Origin: Heteronotia binoei
Taxonomy: Eukaryota
Direction of reading: 5' to 3'
Length of the DNA stretch: 64,000 nt
Assembly (NCBI RefSeq): GCF_032191835.1
Contig: NC_083237.1
Coordinates: 496,001-560,000 of the forward strand
Shown: positions 7,669 through 62,054 of the stretch, piece after piece
Layout: each line of letters opens with the position of its first letter
Numbering within the stretch: position 1 is the first letter of the stretch
Made by a program: the position numbers and the translations under genes
The notes under the pieces: generated by a model
Told to the model about the DNA's origin: nothing
Seen by the model: only the letters and a program-made list of their open reading frames with translations
Databases searched by the model: none

Positions 7669-17479
<9,811 letters not shown>

Positions 17480-54626: not shown

Positions 54627-55419
54627 GGAACTGGCTTCCCCTGCCTGGGGATGGATGGAGGCAGGGAGGACGCCGGCCCCCTCCCATGAATGTTTCTTTA
54701 TCCCCCCTCCCACTTTGTGTCTTTTGTGCTGTATGGTGGTGGGGGGGAGACTTTTAATGTGACTTATTGGGGGGCAGTTTCGTGTTCAGCTTCTCCCTCC
54801 CCCTGCTGCTGTTTTCCAAATGGATTTTAATGTTTAAGGACATTCTCTCTCCCTGCCCCCCCATGCACTGGAGTCCTTCTTGGGCATTATCTTCTGTCCT
54901 GCCTCTCCCTGCCCCTGTGGATAGTTTATTGGAGCTGCACCCAGTCGGGGCTAGTGCGTGCCTGTCTCTCCCTTCCCTGGGGCTCTGCCAGTGCCATATG
55001 CCCCCAGGAGGAGGAGTTCTGTGCCAGCTGCAGCCAGCCCCTCCCCTTGTTTATCAGGTTGGCACAGGTGGCTGCCGTGTCTGTGCAAAGGAGAACAGAA
55101 TAAAATGAAGCAATTCTTCACTTGCCTGCAGCTTCCATTTCTCAAGGGATCACACACACCCTGCAGGCTGCACATGTTTATTTGGTGCCTTTCCCCCCCT
55201 TCCAAGTAACCCCCAAAACAGAACGCTGCAACATCCCTGAAGTCTCTGCCCTGCTGCTGCAGCAGTCCTCAAAGCTCAGCAGCACAGGCAGCAGCTGCCT
55301 GGCCACAAGCCCTCTGGGCTAGTTCTTCCAGAAGGTGACAGGCCCAGCTCTCCCCTAGGTATGCCCAGCGGCGGCCCAAGACAATCCCCTTCCAGTCCAG
55401 AAGGAGCCTCCTTCACACG

Positions 55420-58400
55420 TCAGTACCTGCAACAGACAGAATCATGAAGCTGGAAGGAACCACAGAGGCCATCCAGTCCAACCCAGCGTAGACCGTAGAG
55501 CATCCGTGACCGGGATTCATCCAGCTGCTGCTTACACTGCCAGTGAGAGGGAGCTGAACAGCTGCTTCCACTGCTGAAAAAGTTTTTCCTGCTCTCCAGC
55601 CGGTCCCTTCCAACCCTTCATTTAAACCCAGGATTGCAAGTCCTCTCCTGCCAACAGGAAGAGCTCCCTGCCCTCTGCTAAGGGGCAGCCCTTTAGAGAG
55701 CCATCCTGTTCCCCTCCCCCCCCCCCCCCGGCCACCTCCTCTTCTTCAGACTGAACAGCCCAAGTCCCCCAGCTTCTCCTCCTAGGGCTTCCTGGTCTCC
55801 AGGACCCTGAGCATCCTTGGTGCTCTCCTCTGCACTTGACCATTCTGTCCACATCCTTCTTGAAATGAGGCCTCCAGATCTGCACCCAAGACTCCAGGTG
55901 TGGCCTGACCAATGCAGTGTGCAGCAAGACTTTGACATCTTGTGATCTGGAAGTTGTGCCTCTGTTGATACACCCCAAGATGGCATTAGCCTTTGTTGAC
56001 ACGCTGCACTGGCTGCTGCTATTTTACTGTGCCCCTTTACCCTGACATCTGATCTGCACACATAAGAACATAAGAGAAGCCATGTTGGATCAGTCCAACA
56101 CTGTGTCACACAGTGGCCAAAAAAAGGAGGTTCACAAGTGGGGCTAAAAGTCTTTCCATTTTGCCTCGCCCCCGCCGCAAGCACCAAGAAGACAGACCAT
56201 CCCTGCCCCGGACAGAGAACTCCCATCAATACCCTGTGGCTAACAGTCACGGATGGACCTCTGCTCCATATTTTTATCCAATCCCCTCTTAAAGCTGGCT
56301 ATGCTTGTAGCCGCCACCACCTCCTGTGGCAGTGAATTCCACATGTTAATCACCCTTTGGGTGAAGAAGGACTTCCTTTAATCCGTTCTAACCCGACTGC
56401 TCAGCAATTTCATCGAATGCCCACGAGTTCTTGTATTGTGAGAAAAGGAGAAAAGTACATACTTCTTTCTCTACTTTCTCCATCCCATGCATAACCTTGT
56501 AAACCTCTCTCATGTCACCCCGCAGTTGACGTTTCTCCAAGCTAAAGAGTCCCAAGTGTTTTAATCTTTCTTCATAGGGAAAGTGTTCTGAACCTTTAAT
56601 CATTCTAGTTGCCCTTTTCTGCCCTTTTTCCAACGCTATATCGTTTTTGAGATGCGGTGACCACACACTGCTACCTAAAAGCGTATCCCCCCTCCAGTCA
56701 GTTACCCCAAGAAGCAAAACCTCTGAGCATGTACGGAATGATTTGCCGTAGCCTCTCACCTGTGCTGCTGGGGGGACTCCTGACCCATCCCGCAGGGGAA
56801 GACATGTTTGGGGGGATGGCCTGCCCCATGGTTACAGCCTAGGCCACAAAAAAACAAAACAATGGTAAACCCACAGGCCATTCTGCTGGGTCCCGTTGCC
56901 AGCCCAGTCTTCTTTCTGCCAGCCACAGCAGCTCAAAAGCAAGCCCCATGGCAGTCAGTAGGAGCAACGGGAAAGGCTGCCCATGGCCAGCTCTCCCCTG
57001 ACCCCCTCTCAGGGACGGAAGAGACCCGACTGCTGCTCCTTTTCCCTGGTGCGGCAGTTGCGATCAGCCCCACTGAATTCACCACCCCTTGCCCCAAGTC
57101 CCTTTATGTCCCAGACCCCCTCCCCCCCAGGGGGGAATCCTCTTGGGCCTCCTGCCCAGGACAGCCACAAGAGCCCCCCCGGCATACCCTCCTTTCAGGC
57201 TCCTCCCAAGATGCACTGCTGCTGGCTTCTCTGGCTGGCATTGTGTGGCCCATCCTGGAGAGTCCAAAAGGAAAGAGAAACCAGGTTTGGGTGCAGAGCC
57301 AGCTAGTCTCTTTACGGCTTTGAGAGGCCCAGATATTTGCATCTGCTGCTGAAAAGTTCCCCCTGCCCTGTGTAGCCCAGGCAAGCTCCATCTTGGAAGC
57401 TAAGCGGGATCAAGTGTGCTTACTACTCGAATGGGAAACTGTCCTTGAAATACCCAGTCAGGAGGCATGGGCAGGCTTATTCAGCCACCTCCCTGAATAT
57501 CCTTCAGGCCCCCAGTAGGGGTCAGTCACCAGTCACAACGTCCAGGTGCAGACACATAAATGCATACACGTGAAAAATACCCCCCTCAAAAAAGACATCA
57601 CCCGTCCTGTGGGCTGTGTTCAAAATCACAGAGCAGAAACCTGCTGAGCGCTGCCTGTGCCAGGCTGATTCTGGGAATTAGGCAGATCGTGAGAGGGAAG
57701 GCAGGAAGCCTTGCATCAGGCCTTAGTTCTCGTGACCTTCCTTACACAACCAGGGAAATGCTGTTTACCACTTTGGGGACAGTCAGCAATTTTTCTCCAG
57801 GCTAGTTTGACCAGAGTTCCTGGAAGGGGTTTTTTTGTGGGCGAAGAGCAGGGATCATTGGGAGTGTGGGGGGAGGGATTTTGGGTTTCCTGCATTGTGC
57901 AGGTTGGACTACATAGCCCTAGGGACCCTTTCAATTCTATAATTCTATGATCGTTAGAGAGCAGAGCTGCTCTCTACAACAGCCCTCCCCCCAAAAAACC
58001 CTTGCGAGCAAAAACGTCAATGCCACTCAGCCGCTGTAGTTGGAAAGAGGAAGCGGGGGGGGGGGGGTGGAAAGACAGCACTTACTGCAGGGCTCCTGCT
58101 CTCACTCTCTGCAACTTCTCCCGGAGGCGCCTCACCTTCCGCTGATACCTAGAGAGAGCCAGCAGGGGGAGATCAGACCCACTTCCTTATTCACTCAGCA
58201 AGTTCTTTCAAGTAAGCATCAGGAAGAACTTCCTGCCAGTTAGAGCCGTTCCTCAGTGGAACAGGCTTCCTCCTCGGAAGGTGGTGGACTCTCCTTCTTT
58301 GGAGGTTTTTCAGCAGAGACTAGAGGGCCATCTGACAGCAATGAGGATCCTGTGAACTTCAGCAAACCATGAGAAGGAGGGCAGAGGGAGGTCCTTGTGA

Positions 58401-61307
58401 TTTTCCTGCATTATGCAAGGGGTTGGACTACATAGCCCTGGAGGTCTCTTCCAATTCTGTGATTCTATAAGCCCAAATGAAGTAGAAAAAGGAACCAACA
58501 TGTACAATAACCACCACAATAGGCTACAGTACTACTTGCTGGAGAACCTATCTTTTCAGCTGTTCTAACCCCTTTGTCAAAAAGTCCTCCTCAGCATTTG
58601 TTTTGTAGATGGCAGAAGTATTTGTGGTCTCCTCGGGCAGGCTGTTCAACCAAGCAGGTGCCCCTGCAGAGAATGACCGATTGGAGGCCATCGTCCTCCT
58701 GCAAAGGCTGTGTGGGTGAGCAAGACAGTCCCGCAGGCACGAGGGCCCACGGGCAAGGAATTCTTGCAACGTGACAGCCACTGTCCTGAACTGAAGCCAG
58801 GAACTGGCCTGGAGCCAATGGAGTGTGTCTGTAGAATGGGTGTAGTCGTGGAAGAGGGCACTTCCTGAGGTTTCTTTTTCTCTCTGTTACTCTAACCTAT
58901 GGGTTGTGAATTGAATCTGTCAGACGCGGCTGATAATAAGAACAAGAAAGAAAAAAAACCAAGCCAAAGACATCAAGGACACACCACATTAAGGAGAGTG
59001 TCCTTTTACCGGCTGCTGAACAAGAAATTTAGCTAGAAGAAAGTTTTCTAATCTAGAAGCTATTGTAACTAATAATACCTGGAGAAAATTCATTCCACTG
59101 TTGCTTACAGGGGTTGAATCCATTTCTCTCAAGCCTCAATATGCCCTGCACATTCCATCAGAAGATGGGTCACAGTTTCTATCTCACCCACACCATAACC
59201 GCAGTATCTATCTGGGAATGGTATCCCTAAGATACGTCCTTCAGAAACTGCAGATGATAGTGCATTTAATCTTACAAACGTAACTGCTCATTGTACCTTG
59301 AAATTGCGAGAATTAACAGATATTTTGGTATTGCAAAAAGCTGTGGGATACCCATCTAAGGAAGAAAGGAACATGTCCAGCTTGACAGATGATACTACTA
59401 TTACCAACCTCCTCCATAACCTGCCACTTAATAATCAAGTACTCGGTGGCTTTGATCAGTCTACTAATTACACCAAGCGCCCTTCAAGCAGCAGACTTAA
59501 TACTTTGAGGCATCAAGGTGGGGAGGGGAGAGAAACAGCAAGAAGCCCTGCCCCCATCTTACTTTTCTTCTTGCTCCAAGGCCCAGTTGAGCCGCTCAGC
59601 CTCCAGGGCCTTCTCTCTCACCCAGCGGGCCTCCAGCTCCTGCCGCTGTTGCTGGGCTCTGTGCAGCAGACCCCGCACGCAATCCAGCTCCCCACGCAGC
59701 CCCTCGGCCTCCTGGGAGAGCTCCCAGGCCTGGCACTGCAGCCCTTGGTGCTGGTGTCGAAGAGCTGCCAAGTCCTGCGCGAGGCGCTGCGTCCTGGAAG
59801 GGCAGCCTGGAGTGAGAAGCCCCTCCTTTTTCTGGGTCCCTGCTGCACAGGGCAAGAGCTCCCACCCCACTCCCTGGCCTTCTCCCACCTGGCCTGCTGC
59901 TCCCGGCTCTCCCCTTCAGTCCTTCCCAGGGTCTCAGTGAGGAAGGCCAGGCGCTGGTGCAGCTGCAGAGGAGAGAAGAGCAGGGAGGTGAGAGAGAAGG
60001 AGAAGATGATATTGGATTTATAGCCCGCCCTCCACTCCAAATCTCAAAGTCTCAAAGCAACTCACAATCTCCTTTCCCTTCCTCCCCCACAACAGACACC
60101 CTGTGAGGTAGATGAAGATACTGGATTTATATCCCGCCCTCCACTTCGGAGAGTCTCAGAGCGGCTCACAATCTCCTTTCCCTTCCTCCCCCACAACAGA
60201 CACGCTGTGAGGTGGGTGGGCTGAGAGGCTCTCCCAGAAGCTGCCGTTTCAAGGACAGAGTCTCAGAGCAGCCTACAATCTCCTTTACCTTCCTCCCCCA
60301 CAACAGACACCCTGTGAGGTTGGTGGGGCTAAGAGGGCTCGCTCAGAAGCTGCCCTTTCAAGGACAGAGTCTCAGAGCGGCCTACAATCTCCTTTCCCTT
60401 CCTCCCCCACAACAGATCCCTGTGAGGCGGGTGGGGCTGAGAGAACTCTGACAGCAGCTTCCCTTTCAAGGACAGATCTGCAAGAGCTCTGGCTGACGCA
60501 AGGCCATTCCAGCAGCTGCAGGTGGAGGAGTGGGGAATCAAACCCGGTTCTCCCAGATAAGAGAGCTATGGCTGACCCAAGGCCATGCCAGCAGGTGCAA
60601 GTGGAGGAGAGGGGAATCAAACCCGGTTCTCCCAGATAAAAGAGCTATGGCTGACCCAAGGCCATTCCAGCAGCTGCAGGTGGAGGAGTGGGGAATCAAA
60701 CCCGGTTCTCCCAGATAAGAGTCCGCGTACTTCACCACCACACCAACCTGGCTCTCCTCAGCCCCGTCCACCCACCCCAGCAGCCAGCCAGCCCTCCCTC
60801 CCGCAGGGGCCATCCCCTGGGCACGAGGCCTTTGGCAGGGGACCACCTCCCTGCCGGCCCTGCGCTCCAGAGGTAGACTGCCTCAGGCTGGGGAGGCTCC
60901 CCCGCAGGGCGGACTCACCTCCTGCCGCTCCCGGCGCAGCTCCAGCACCTCCAGCCCCTGCCTGCGGGGGGGGGGGGAGAGGAGAGGTCATGAGTGGAGT
61001 GGGGAGGGGAGGGGAGGGGAGCCCCTCCCTCCCCCTCCTCCCCCCTTACTCGGTTCCAGCGGCGGCGCCGCGCAGCAGCGTCTCCAGGCGGTCCTGCAGC
61101 TTCTCATCTGGAGGGGAGGGGAGCAGAGGGGGGCGAGGAGTCCGGGGGAGAAAGGGATGGCAGCCGCCCCCTCCCTCCCTCCTCCACCCACCGCCGCCCC
61201 CCCGGGGGCCACTCACGCCTCTCCAGCAGGCCCCGCAGCCGCCCCTCGCGGCCCTCGCGCCTCTCCAGCGCCTCCAGCACGTGCTCCCGCCACGCCGCGC
61301 GCCGCAT
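55420..61307 (-). CDS. Short ATG16-family protein (ATG5-binding helix plus coiled coil, no WD40)
   Basis: Exons 61307-61217, 61107-61050, 60961-60919, 59962-59889 and 59793-59563, all GT-AG and in frame. Candidate last exon starts at 55426 (K-Y-TGA at 55422-55420), with AATAAA (minus) at 55177-55182. Motifs WREHVLEALERR, EVLELRRERQE and QELEARWVREKALEAERLN match ATG16L1 WKRHISEQLRRR, ELTELHKKRGE and QELVTRWMAEKAQEANRLN. The 3' end is uncertain. Confidence 0.8.
55435..56690 (-). mobile_element. Cluster of degenerate CR1 fragments
   Basis: KANAILGCINRG...LVRPHLESWVQIWRPHFKKDVD (55622-56002) and YEERLKHLGLFSLEKRQLRGDM (56388-56759), plus CR1-tail pieces. Confidence 0.88.
58240..58470 (+). mobile_element. 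CR1 3' end (another at about 57880-57950; also 44420-44550)
   Basis: ggttggactacatagccctggaggtctcttccaattctgtgattctat, a CR1 3' hairpin with ATTCTRTG repeats. Confidence 0.75.
58548..58790 (-). mobile_element. Degenerate L2-like LINE 3' fragment
   Basis: Translation SNRSFSAGAPAWLNSLPEET resembles the L2 motif RAFSVAAPxLWNSLP. Confidence 0.45.
58950..59500 (-). mobile_element. Degenerate non-LTR retrotransposon ORF2 C-terminus (zinc-knuckle region)
   Basis: Minus frame RLNALSSAVSEGRILGIPFPDRYCGYGVGEIETVTHLLMECAG, a decayed CCHC-type motif with nearby stops. AT-rich. Confidence 0.55.
59995..60750 (-). mobile_element. Sauria/Squam-type SINE with internal tandem duplications (109-bp and 79-bp units)
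   Basis: Contains both the 109-bp body unit seen in RNASEK and the 79-bp head unit seen in ACHE. Head ends at cttcaccaccacaccaacctggct (about 60730-60753). Confidence 0.85.
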
Positions 61308-61473
61308 CCCTGCACGTGACCGCGCGCAAAGGCTGACGGGACTCGTAGGCCCCGGGCGTCTTTTGAAGACTCTGACGCATGCGCGCGAGGGAGAACGCCT
61401 CCGGGTGCCGTGGCGCGCATGCGTCGTGCGGGGAGGCCGGAAGGGGCGCGACGGCGGTCGGCGAGGGCCAAGC
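61308..61473. promoter_or_regulatory. Bidirectional promoter, ATG16-like/MED11
   Basis: 166 bp between divergent ATGs. NRF1-like GCATGCGC at 61377 and GCGCATGCGT at 61415-61424; ETS CCGGAAG at 61437-61443. Confidence 0.8.
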
Positions 61474-62054
61474 ATGGCGTCGGGCTCGTCGGGAGGCGGC
61501 GGCGGGGCGTCAGGGGCGGCGGGGGGCGCGTACAGCCTGGGCCTGGCCAACGAGCGGCTGCGGCTGCTGGAGGAGCTGGAGCGGGAGATCGGGGCGGCGC
61601 TGCAGTGCGCAGGTGGGCGGGGCCTCCCGGGGGCGGGGCGGGAGGGCGGGGCCAGGCCGGTGACGTCACGCTCCCTGCCCCTCCCCCTGCAGGGACGGTG
61701 ATCCTGGAGCTGTCCAAGGAGAAGCCCAACGAGCGGCTGCTGGACCGGCAGGCGGGGCAGTTCGCCGCCTCCGTGCAGAAGGTGGAGGCAGAGCTCTCCG
61801 CGCAGATCCGCTACCTGGCACAGGTAAGGCCCTTCCGGGGATCGGCTGCATGGCCTCCAGGGTGCCCCCTGTGACCCTCCTCTCCCCTCCCGCAGGTGGC
61901 CACCGGGCAGCCCCACGAGGGCTCCAGCTACTCCGCCCGCAAGGACTGCCAGATGGCCCTCAACCGCGTGGACTACGCCCGCCTCAAGCTGGGGGACCTC
62001 TGCCGCGCCTGCGAGCCTCTCCTCCTGCCCGCCGAGCACCACCAGCAGCCCTGA
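61474..62054 (+). CDS. MED11: Mediator subunit 11, 142 aa
   Basis: Exons 61474-61612, 61693-61823 and 61896-62054. Protein ...[34 protein letters not shown]...[38 protein letters not shown] at 63086-63091. Confidence 0.96.

Follow-up and report, generated by a model that had tools for sequence, protein, structure and literature searches.

The closest described systems are the vertebrate proteins ATG16L1 and ATG16L2, the yeast and fungal Atg16 proteins, and engineered derivatives of ATG16L1. ATG16L1 (607 aa) begins with an ATG5-interacting helix, the motif of which comprises W13, I17, L21, R24 and Q28 (PMC6769624), and continues into a long dimerization coiled coil. The conserved end of this coiled coil (RW-x2-EKA-x-EA-x-R-x-N) binds RAB33B, with contacts at R193, L205, N206 and N209; N209A causes a 9-fold and N206A a 36-fold loss of affinity (PMC8496732). 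E226R and E230R each abolish binding of ATG16L1 to WIPI2b, and mutants of the E226R/E230R type fail to rescue starvation autophagy (PMC4104028, PMC9977175). A linker, a FIP200 site and a WD40 propeller complete the protein. ATG16L2 is a fast-evolving paralog of about 600 aa that also has the WD40 propeller; it is basic at 226 and not acidic at 230, and it has kept K198, A202 and N206 and lost R193 and L205. Yeast and fungal Atg16 have only two elements, an ATG5-binding helix and the coiled coil behind it, and in yeast it is Atg21 that recruits the protein.

In vertebrates, ATG16 is regarded as a family of two genes, and a survey of duplicated ATG genes from 2026, the main text of which does not mention reptiles, speaks of 'the ATG16 pair'. 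Here we describe a third member, without a propeller, which squamates have retained for roughly 200 My. It lies in a 64,000-nucleotide stretch of Heteronotia binoei DNA (the window; all coordinates are window positions). Automatic annotation has already put the gene into databases under several misleading names, and it is undescribed in papers: literature searches for 'ATG16L3', for a squamate ATG16 and for an ohnolog of ATG16 found no description of it. Like ATG16L1, the short ATG16 protein has an N-terminal helix bearing W, I/V, L and R, the long coiled coil and the conserved coiled-coil end. Unlike ATG16L1, it is 239 aa long, lacks the linker, the FIP200 site and the WD40 propeller, and belongs to a family in which the WIPI2b contacts are replaced. 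It resembles ATG16L2 in its fast evolution, in the residues at 226 and 230 and in the retention of K198, A202 and N206, and differs from it in lacking WD40, in forming a separate clade and in keeping R193 and L205. The resemblance to yeast Atg16, a WD40-less architecture, is convergent, via secondary loss; the exons and sequence are of the vertebrate ATG16L type.

A nine-exon gene between MED11 and ARRB2

The short ATG16 gene is a genuine, transcribed, spliced, protein-coding gene with nine exons, encoding 239 aa (RefSeq XP_060111425.1, 'autophagy-related protein 16-1-like', Heteronotia binoei). It is on the minus strand, with MED11 on one side and ARRB2 on the other, as a sequence-only reading of the window had placed them. 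ARRB2 (+) runs to about 55100, and MED11 has its ATG at 61476 (+). Exons were located by exact splice mapping and with RNA contigs, and the strand of the transcripts was set from GT-AG sites.

Exon 1 (61217..61307, -; 91 nt, phase 1; ATG at 61307-61305) encodes aa 1-30, namely the helix carrying the ATG5-interacting motif (W6, V10, L14, R17) plus the first part of helix 2. In the profile alignment these motif residues pair with W13, I17, L21 and R24 of ATG16L1. An RNA contig spans 61217-61449 and runs on beyond the exon-1 donor. Exon 2 (61050..61107, -; 58 nt, phase 2) encodes aa 31-50, which complete the N-terminal helix and form a Gly/Ala hinge. The coiled coil begins in exon 3 (60919..60961, -; 43 nt, phase 0), which is followed by exon 4 (59889..59962, -; 74 nt, phase 2). 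These four exons come from the splice map, and the junction between exons 4 and 5 was present in RNA from two runs. Exon 5 (59563..59793, -; 231 nt, phase 2), covered by RNA contigs, encodes the main coiled coil, aa 90-166.

All five of these exons carry canonical AG/GT sites, and the sequence-only reading had identified them correctly, together with the intron phases (1,2,0,2,2) and the 74-nt fourth exon, which equal those of the gecko's own ATG16L1. Its peptide had one Glu too many at the junction of exons 2 and 3 (...GTEEQG... instead of the spliced ...GTEQG...), and its five-exon, 167-aa product does not correspond to the actual one. The TAA at which that product ended (59561-59559) sits inside the exon-5 splice donor (AA/GTAAGA; GTAAGA at 59557..59562, -), where the RNA contigs splice, and would be translated only if intron 5 were retained. 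Because the TAA is within a donor that is spliced, and because additional exons follow, the product is 239 aa from nine exons.

The RNA contigs join exon 5 to exon 6 (58086..58148, -; 63 nt), exon 7 (57188..57254, -; 67 nt) and exon 8 (56760..56838, -; 79 nt). Exon 6 encodes a helix (aa 167-187) homologous to about residues 212-232 of ATG16L1, which form WIPI2b-binding site 1; at position 58130 in this exon, RNA contig depth was equal to that of the spliced contig. Exons 7 and 8, defined by RNA contigs and the splice map, encode a disordered tail that is Ser/Pro-rich in exon 7. A related organism's transcript has a 2-nt deletion at 56791, in exon 8. The coding part of exon 9 (55413..55426, -), placed by the RefSeq protein and exact splice mapping, encodes GTDV and the stop codon TGA (55415-55413). 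A further 121 RNA-contig bases past the aligned stretch are consistent with exon 9, and the 3' UTR is predicted to go on. Contigs from the RNA of two organisms, in two runs, thus join exons 4-5-6-7-8 at low depth, so the spliced transcripts that the sequence-only reading had wanted to see do exist.

The 168 bp from ATG to ATG between this gene and MED11 (61308..61475) are G+C-rich and presumably form a bidirectional promoter; the same head-to-head arrangement is found in Paroedura and Anolis. At the other end, the short ATG16 gene and ARRB2 end tail-to-tail, with a polyadenylation signal (AATAAA, 55177..55182, -) predicted from sequence about 75 nt from that of ARRB2 (55099-55104, +). We obtained exact nine-exon maps in four squamates, and the frame was intact at all four loci. 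Across the mapped squamate loci exon 5 is 210 nt or 231 nt, reflecting heptad-sized deletions.

Homology to ATG16 and distribution among squamates

The protein is an ATG16 homolog, as had been proposed. A profile of 14 orthologs matched PDB chain 5npv_B, ATG16L1, at E = 3.8e-16, with profile positions 7-219 collinear with chain positions 4-240, and the three top PDB matches of the family profile were all ATG16L1. Exon 5 alone matched PDB ATG16L1 at E = 3.4e-4. Against the Heteronotia paralogs, BLASTP gave E = 7e-8 for ATG16L1 (about 29% identity over 112 aa) and 1e-3 for ATG16L2, and a family HMM run on two gecko exons scored 24.8 bits for ATG16L1 and 4.3 bits for ATG16L2. Five introns are at aligned codons, with identical phases, in the short ATG16 gene and gecko ATG16L1. 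Exon 5 of the short gene is exactly 21 nt (one heptad, 7 aa) shorter than that of ATG16L1, which removes I171. The gene is therefore a third ATG16 locus in the gecko genome, besides ATG16L1 and ATG16L2. The outcome of the suggested Pfam search was mixed: PF08614 (ATG16) was the best family for seven of eight orthologs, but with 13.6-23.6 bits, below the gathering score of 33.7. A few orthologs carry a precomputed PF08614 match.

The AF2 monomer model has two helices with a break at residues 41-47, an uninterrupted helix from 48 to 187 (pLDDT 95-99) and a disordered tail of 52 residues, where the coding sequence ends. When this model was compared with AFDB clusters, Foldseek returned unrelated helices only (E 0.27 or worse), because the model is essentially a single long helix. 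The nearest ESM Atlas clusters carry ATG16 names, with scores of 0.93-0.95. A fungal ATG16-domain cluster is among the nearest Atlas neighbors of the Elgaria ortholog (0.87), which we regard as a lead only. A 452-member chordate Atlas cluster was considered as a source of non-squamate orthologs and set aside; its members are most likely N-terminal fragments or isoforms of ATG16L1. The absence of WD40 was confirmed, in that tblastn with the linker and WD40 of ATG16L1 and ATG16L2 against four squamate loci returned nothing better than E = 0.5.

The gene is annotated full-length in about 25 lizards and snakes, representing all major squamate clades, so the caution that an annotation might already exist was justified. 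Its placement between MED11 and ARRB2 is shared by a gecko, an iguanian and a snake. No ortholog outside Squamata was found when 1.84 billion protein representatives were searched exhaustively with exon 5, and two protein profile searches (131-633 aa) returned only squamates; matches without a species name nest inside squamates. The gene has passed down vertically from the squamate ancestor, in its place between MED11 and ARRB2.

Interaction surfaces, constraint and possible role

The helical core of the protein is under purifying selection, and the C-terminal tail is evolving neutrally. The ratio dN/dS was 0.38 for the core, 0.15 for aa 139-166, 0.94 for the tail and 0.49 overall. Sixteen columns are invariant and cluster at the interaction surface known from ATG16L1, and the most conserved stretch, within exon 5, is aa 141-160 (ELEARWVREKALEAERLNWA; 59580..59639, -).

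The ATG5-interacting motif is kept in part. All 17 N-termini have equivalents of W, V(L), L and R, with variation at adjacent positions; the Q28 position, which the sequence-only reading had counted as matched, is variable. The helix-2 alignment differs between HMMER and MAFFT, and in the version that fits the intron position helix 2 keeps its hydrophobic positions. At the coiled-coil end, K150, A154 and N158, the counterparts of K198, A202 and N206 of ATG16L1, are invariant in the family, so retention of these three residues, claimed from the gecko sequence, holds throughout. The R193 equivalent is kept in 17 of 18 sequences and position 205 is always hydrophobic. The N209 equivalent is Asn in 13 of 18 and Leu in Heteronotia, Gekko and Paroedura.

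The WIPI2/FIP200-binding segment had been described as missing. This is correct for the FIP200 site: past the exon-6 helix, the alignment meets an unrelated, non-conserved tail, and the segment at about 235-241 is absent. The homolog of 212-232 is present, however, in exon 6, with its WIPI2b contacts substituted. Of the site 1 residues of ATG16L1 (L220, L224, E226, A227, A228 and E230), L220 and L224 are kept. The E226 equivalent is Arg in 11 of 18 sequences, Heteronotia included, and Glu in three; that of A228 is Arg or Lys in 16 of 18 (Arg in Heteronotia) and Gln and Gly in the remaining two; that of E230 is never acidic (Gly in Heteronotia); and that of D164, in site 2, is never Asp. With a basic residue at 226 and a non-acidic one at 230, loss of binding to both WIPI2b and FIP200 is expected, as published for ATG16L2.

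These features suggest a mechanism. Because W, V, L and R and the hydrophobic face of helix 2 are kept, the N-terminal helix should bind ATG12-ATG5. Helix 48-187 is predicted, from the AF2 monomer and the alignment with ATG16L1, to form a parallel dimeric coiled coil, and its conserved EKAxEAxRxN end may still engage RAB33-type GTPases, probably more weakly in Heteronotia, in which N209 is Leu. Given the changes of the E226R/A228/E230 type and the missing FIP200 site and propeller, recruitment of the protein by WIPI2b, FIP200, V-ATPase or any other WD40 ligand is not expected. It would then behave like ATG16L2, as an ATG12-ATG5-binding scaffold without canonical phagophore targeting, and could either buffer ATG12-ATG5 and RAB33 or compete for them, or else offer a RAB33-directed scaffold independent of WIPI2. 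We infer both the partners and the competitor or scaffold role from the conservation of residues. If they are right, the gene would be a natural separation-of-function allele, with the ATG5 and RAB33 surfaces kept and the WIPI2, FIP200 and WD40 surfaces lost, with which targeting of the ATG12-ATG5 E3 without WIPI2 could be tested. It would be a natural analogue of the engineered N-terminal fragments and the E226R/E230R mutant of ATG16L1, predicted to bind ATG12-ATG5 without WIPI2b; unlike those constructs, it is a natural gene that has been selected for roughly 200 My and has many further substitutions.

The distribution of constraint could also be read differently, with the protein functioning as a coiled coil outside autophagy conjugation, without binding ATG5, either as a RAB33/Golgi adaptor or in an unrelated role. 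Constraint is strongest at the end that resembles the RAB33 site, the N-terminal 45 residues have a dN/dS of 0.80 in the gecko pair, and Q28 is not conserved. In addition, exon 1 is inside the CpG island of the MED11 promoter (dS 0.15), so part of the conservation seen at the N-terminus could reflect the DNA rather than the protein. We nevertheless consider this reading unlikely: W, V, L and R persist in 17 of 17 N-termini while adjacent positions vary, N-terminal dN/dS is 0.37-0.48 in deeper comparisons, and the intron-consistent alignment preserves the hydrophobic positions of helix 2.

Origin and persistence of the gene

Each ATG16 gene of Heteronotia binoei is next to a different arrestin gene. 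ATG16L1 is 36 kb from SAG (S-arrestin), ATG16L2 is 120 kb from ARRB1 (beta-arrestin-1) and the short ATG16 gene abuts ARRB2. The arrestins were located with an ARRB2 exon query, used in place of an Arrestin_C Pfam genome search that gave only large-exon ARRDC-type genes. The four arrestins are products of 2R (PMC5501109), and three ATG16 genes beside three arrestin paralogs is the pattern that an ohnolog from whole-genome duplication should show. A genome-wide PF08614 scan had no match near ARR3 (C11:119 kb). The short ATG16 gene and ARRB2 are convergent, as are ATG16L2 and ARRB1; ATG16L1 and SAG are in tandem.

In a maximum-likelihood tree, three clades were recovered: the short ATG16 family (100/100), ATG16L2 (100/99) and tetrapod ATG16L1 (95/90), with the short family outside tetrapod ATG16L1, frog and mammals included. 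The tree was made without an outgroup or fish sequences; an alignment with a poorly aligned family row and ATG16L2 exon fragments was left out, and a replacement alignment was used. The rate of evolution of the family is more than ten times that of ATG16L1, and the family's long branch invites long-branch artifacts in the tree. In AU tests, nesting in squamate ATG16L2 was rejected (p 0.006). Nesting in ATG16L1 fell short of formal rejection (p 0.055-0.067).

From these data, the short ATG16 gene is probably a 2R ohnolog of the ancestral arrestin-ATG16 gene pair. The earlier proposal of an ohnolog thus gains from the arrestin neighbors, although the tree by itself leaves room for a later duplication of ATG16L1 (AU p 0.055). 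The ancestral pair would have been duplicated in 2R, after which this copy would have been reduced to the six-exon N-terminal module, without linker or propeller. We consider it likely that the account as a whole is right, that is, that this is a genuine WD40-less third ATG16, a 2R ohnolog and an ATG12-ATG5 scaffold without canonical targeting. A more specific version is tentative, and we lean slightly toward doubting it in full: that the gene is the sole surviving third 2R ohnolog ('ATG16L3'), sister to ATG16L2 as ARRB2 is to ARRB1, lost independently in every other vertebrate lineage examined and reduced to a yeast-like, ATG5-binding coiled coil in squamates, where it would act as a WIPI2-independent, RAB33-working ATG12-ATG5 scaffold or decoy that modulates ATG8 lipidation. 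A 2R ohnolog would add a hidden member to the autophagy gene set and document an ancestral arrestin-ATG16 linkage. The gene is squamate-restricted, fast-evolving and already automatically annotated, and its function is predicted from sequence, which bounds its significance.

The first six exons of ATG16L1 might instead have been duplicated on the squamate or lepidosaur stem, landed between ARRB2 and MED11 by chance and diverged very fast. The gene is found in squamates only, and absence elsewhere means that a 2R origin needs many independent losses; the family is also closer to ATG16L1 than to ATG16L2 (24.8 vs 4.3 bits; E 7e-8 vs 1e-3), and a clade of the family with squamate ATG16L1 survives the AU test (p 0.055). 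Against this, chance insertion within a few kb of either remaining arrestin has a probability of about 1e-5 in a 2.6-Gb genome, and all three ATG16 genes adjoin arrestins. The tree sets the family outside tetrapod ATG16L1 (95/90), the convergent orientation follows the ATG16L2-ARRB1 pattern and not the tandem ATG16L1-SAG one, and the basic residue at 226 is shared with ATG16L2. We therefore regard such a duplication as quite improbable and favor the 2R ohnolog.

That the gene is a decaying or functionless relic, transcribed from the MED11 bidirectional promoter with an ORF no longer useful, would fit the low read depth, the overall dN/dS of 0.49 and neutral tail (0.94), the 2-nt indel in exon 8 of the related transcript, the heptad-sized deletions in exon 5 (210 vs 231 nt) and the sub-threshold Pfam scores, but is very improbable given the intact nine-exon frame at four of four loci, the full-length proteins in about 25 species, the clustering of the 16 invariant columns at the ATG16L1 interaction surface, the position of the stop codon in the last exon, because of which nonsense-mediated decay is not expected, and the substitution counts in the core (41 synonymous changes at 133 sites vs 55 non-synonymous changes at 398 sites; chi-square about 19.6).

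Exon structure and transcripts

The sequence-only reading had described a five-exon gene of 167 residues on the minus strand between ARRB2 and MED11. All five exons exist, flanked by AG acceptor and GT donor sites: exon 1 at 61307-61217, exon 2 at 61107-61050, exon 3 at 60961-60919, exon 4 at 59962-59889 and exon 5 at 59793-59563. The substance of that observation stands, but the extent of its gene model does not. The TAA taken as the stop (59561-59559) comprises bases 2-4 of the exon-5 donor, GTAAGA, and RNA contigs splice onward. Exact splice mapping of XP_060111425.1 to the window gave nine exons (91, 58, 43, 74, 231, 63, 67, 79 and 14 nt), with a TGA at 55415-55413 inside the last exon. 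This RefSeq model from H. binoei, named 'autophagy-related protein 16-1-like', has 239 residues and is 100% identical across exon 5. At the exon 2/3 junction, the product had been read as GTEEQG, counting a Glu twice; the spliced product is GTEQG.

We mapped RNA contigs and reads to 55450-61449. A 739-nt contig from run X1 and a 425-nt contig from run X3, which carries a second organism label, both connect exon 4 to exon 5 and then to downstream blocks (61 nt covering 58130, 57187-57253, 56757-56837, and onward). Downstream of the TGA there is an AATAAA at 55182-55177, approximately 75 nt from the opposite-strand ARRB2 signal. At the other end, the ATG of MED11, on the opposite strand, is 168 bp from that of the gene. 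The RNA contig over exon 1 (61217-61449) does not stop at 61449: at least 94 nt more carry it into MED11 exon 1 (61476 onwards). This reflects either a 5' UTR antisense over MED11 or an unstranded assembly that fused both divergent transcripts.

Two introns contain repeats with very high RNA depth. Intron 3 (60000-60760) has several tandem or nested SINE-like copies of about 120-200 bp, whose many internal 'joints' are repeat artefacts and not splicing. Intron 8 has a CR1-type LINE 3' fragment (56050-56650, minus strand) with a reverse-transcriptase C-terminus readable in frame. All four RNA runs cover it at enormous depth and show many variant positions and back-joints there, and it dominates coverage of the interval.

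A third ATG16 locus beside a third arrestin gene

Sequence and exon comparisons show that the gene is an ATG16 homologue, as had been proposed. With exon 5 alone, the three best PDB matches were all ATG16L1 coiled-coil entries (E 3.4e-4). A profile of 14 orthologues matched the ATG16L1 chain 5npv_B with an E value of 3.8e-16, in an alignment collinear from the ATG5-binding helix through residue ~240. ATG16L1 of the same species is 29% identical over 112 residues (BLASTP, E 7e-8). Pfam ATG16 was the top family in seven of eight orthologues, but with scores of 13.6-23.6 bits, under the 33.7-bit cut-off.

We reconstructed the exons of the gecko's own ATG16L1 on contig C6. Intron positions agree between the two genes at the level of aligned codons, as do the phases (1,2,0,2,2), and both have a 74-nt exon 4, as the sequence-only reading had stated. 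Exon 5 is 252 nt in ATG16L1 versus 231 nt here, a difference of exactly one heptad. Exon 6 is 64 nt versus 63 nt and ends in a different phase, and there is no relatedness downstream. An AF2 model has helices at residues 2-41 and 48-187 (the latter with pLDDT 95-99), a hinge at 41-47 and a disordered tail. No trace of ATG16L1/L2 linker or WD40 exons was found in the locus of four squamates, which bears out the WD40-less architecture. In the Paroedura picta orthologue, exon 5 (10765-10975 of locus L021) is 210 nt, a further exact one-heptad coiled-coil deletion that mirrors the difference between this family and ATG16L1.

The gene is a third ATG16 locus. Genome-wide, the family profile matched this locus only, and ATG16L1 and ATG16L2 are on contigs C6 and C3. 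A search of the genome with an ARRB2 exon found four arrestin genes, identified by best PDB matches. ATG16L1 is 36 kb from S-arrestin on C6 (tandem), ATG16L2 is 120 kb from beta-arrestin-1 on C3 (convergent), and the third gene abuts ARRB2 on C15 (convergent). The arrestin on C11 is ambiguous, presumably ARR3, with no ATG16-like match nearby. It is accepted that 2R gave rise to the four arrestins (PMC5501109), and whole-genome duplication of a linked pair predicts what is seen here, an ATG16 gene next to each of three arrestin ohnologs. The odds of a chance insertion beside an arrestin are of the order of 1e-5. The proposed ohnolog origin largely holds. The gene order CXCL16, MED11 (head-to-head), third ATG16 gene, arrestin (tail-to-tail), PELP1 is the same in Paroedura, Anolis carolinensis and Pantherophis.

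The N-terminal region of gekkonid ATG16L2 (Heteronotia and Gekko japonicus, P0149 and P0150; G000:C3:193703862-193703987, equivalent to L018:9862-9987) uses an earlier exon-1 donor and lacks about eight helix-2 residues (RFxDLVQA) retained in Eublepharis, Podarcis and turtles. The N-terminal part of Heteronotia ATG16L2 is also annotated separately, as a 225-residue 'Atg16l2-like' model.

Distribution and phylogeny

Queried with exon 5, an exhaustive phmmer search of 1.84 billion representatives returned 19 matches. Profile searches gave 23 family members at 131-418 residues and about 12 at 199-633 residues, and a score gap separates the family (≥140 bits) from ATG16L1 (≤117). Named matches, from about 25 species, are lizards or snakes without exception, and unnamed matches all nest within squamates. 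Among annotated or assembled proteins, the scope of these searches, there was no family member from tuatara, turtle, crocodile, bird, mammal or frog, although their ATG16L1 is in the same database. The squamate-only range has two further caveats. ARRB2 itself has been reported missing from bird assemblies (PMC5501109). In addition, the ESM Atlas neighbours of family proteins P0001 and P0003 include a 452-member chordate cluster whose WD40-less members bear the name 'autophagy-related protein 16' (255-residue representative, 72% with PF08614), and this cluster is no farther from the family than a 50-member one.

Several orthologues have misleading RefSeq names, including 'eukaryotic translation initiation factor 3 subunit A-like' (Varanus P0018), 'golgin subfamily A member 8M-like' (Lacerta P0028), 'leucine zipper putative tumor suppressor 1-like' (Rhineura P0148) and uncharacterized; several models have spurious N-terminal extensions. 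Literature searches on a third ATG16 gene, on ATG16 in squamates and on ATG16 ohnologs turned up no account of this gene. In a 2026 study of duplicated ATG genes, ATG16 is handled as a pair, short sequences were removed, and reptiles go unmentioned in the main text. The gene is present solely as automatic annotation, and the sequence-only interpretation needs correction on that point.

We inferred a tree from 46 N-terminal regions (240 columns, LG+C20, without outgroup or fish sequence). It had three clades: the third family (100/100), ATG16L2 (100/99) and the ATG16L1 of tetrapods, frog and mammals among them (95/90). Branching within the family matches squamate phylogeny (geckos; lacertids with Rhineura; iguanians; Varanus with snakes). 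AU tests rejected nesting in squamate ATG16L2 (p 0.006). Placement of the family inside squamate, sauropsid or amniote ATG16L1 was disfavoured without being rejected (p 0.055-0.067, delta lnL ~7). The strong conservation of ATG16L1 leaves few discriminating sites, and a very long stem leads to the family; the tree is therefore consistent with an ancient origin but is not proof.

Interaction sites and selective constraint

The ATG5-binding motif of ATG16L1 is W13/I17/L21/R24/Q28 (PMC6769624). In the family, W, V(L), L and R are present in 17 of 17 sequences, as had been noted for Heteronotia; the fifth position, also counted as a match, is variable. Helix-2 residues F32/I35/I36 correspond to L24/L27/L28 under the HMMER alignment, the sole one that preserves the intron-1 position; an ATG16L2 BLASTP alignment backs it and MAFFT differs. 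ATG16L1 contacts RAB33B through R193, L205, N206 and N209, with N206A and N209A lowering affinity 36-fold and 9-fold (PMC8496732). K198, A202 and N206, reported as retained, are invariant in the family; R193 is present in 17 of 18, position 205 is always hydrophobic, and N209 is Asn in 13 of 18 and Leu in Heteronotia.

The WIPI2 segment had been described as missing. Instead, L220 and L224 of WIPI2b site 1 are retained and other contacts are replaced: E226 by Arg in 11 of 18, A228 by Arg or Lys, and E230 never by an acidic residue. At site 2, D164 is Asp in no family member. Either E226R or E230R alone abolishes binding of ATG16L1 to WIPI2b, and there is no binding to WIPI2b or FIP200 by ATG16L2, in which residue 226 is Lys (PMC9977175, PMC4104028). 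The FIP200 segment, as had been stated, and the propeller are absent. The heptad deletion takes out I171, and K179 is Leu. Judging from these features, the protein should escape recruitment by WIPI2b, FIP200 and WD40 ligands and would act like a propeller-less ATG16L2. It might buffer ATG12-ATG5 and RAB33 or compete for them, or it might serve as a RAB33-directed scaffold.

We compared Heteronotia and Paroedura by the Nei-Gojobori method (dS 0.39). The dN/dS ratio was 0.49 for the whole protein, 0.38 for the core (residues 1-186), 0.32 for the coiled coil (46-186), 0.15 for residues 139-166 and 0.94 for the tail (187-239). In the core there were 41 synonymous substitutions in 133 sites versus 55 non-synonymous in 398 (chi-square ~19.6, our own calculation). 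In exon 1, dS was low (0.15), probably because this exon is within the MED11 CpG-island promoter, and protein-level inference for the N-terminus is therefore weaker in this close pair; in deeper pairs its dN/dS was 0.37-0.48. Tail exon sizes are variable, and in exon 8, at 56791, the run X3 contig is 2 nt shorter, a change that would put the last ~15 codons out of frame and fits a tail without constraint. Together with the dN/dS contrast, these features indicate that the helical core is constrained and the tail is not.
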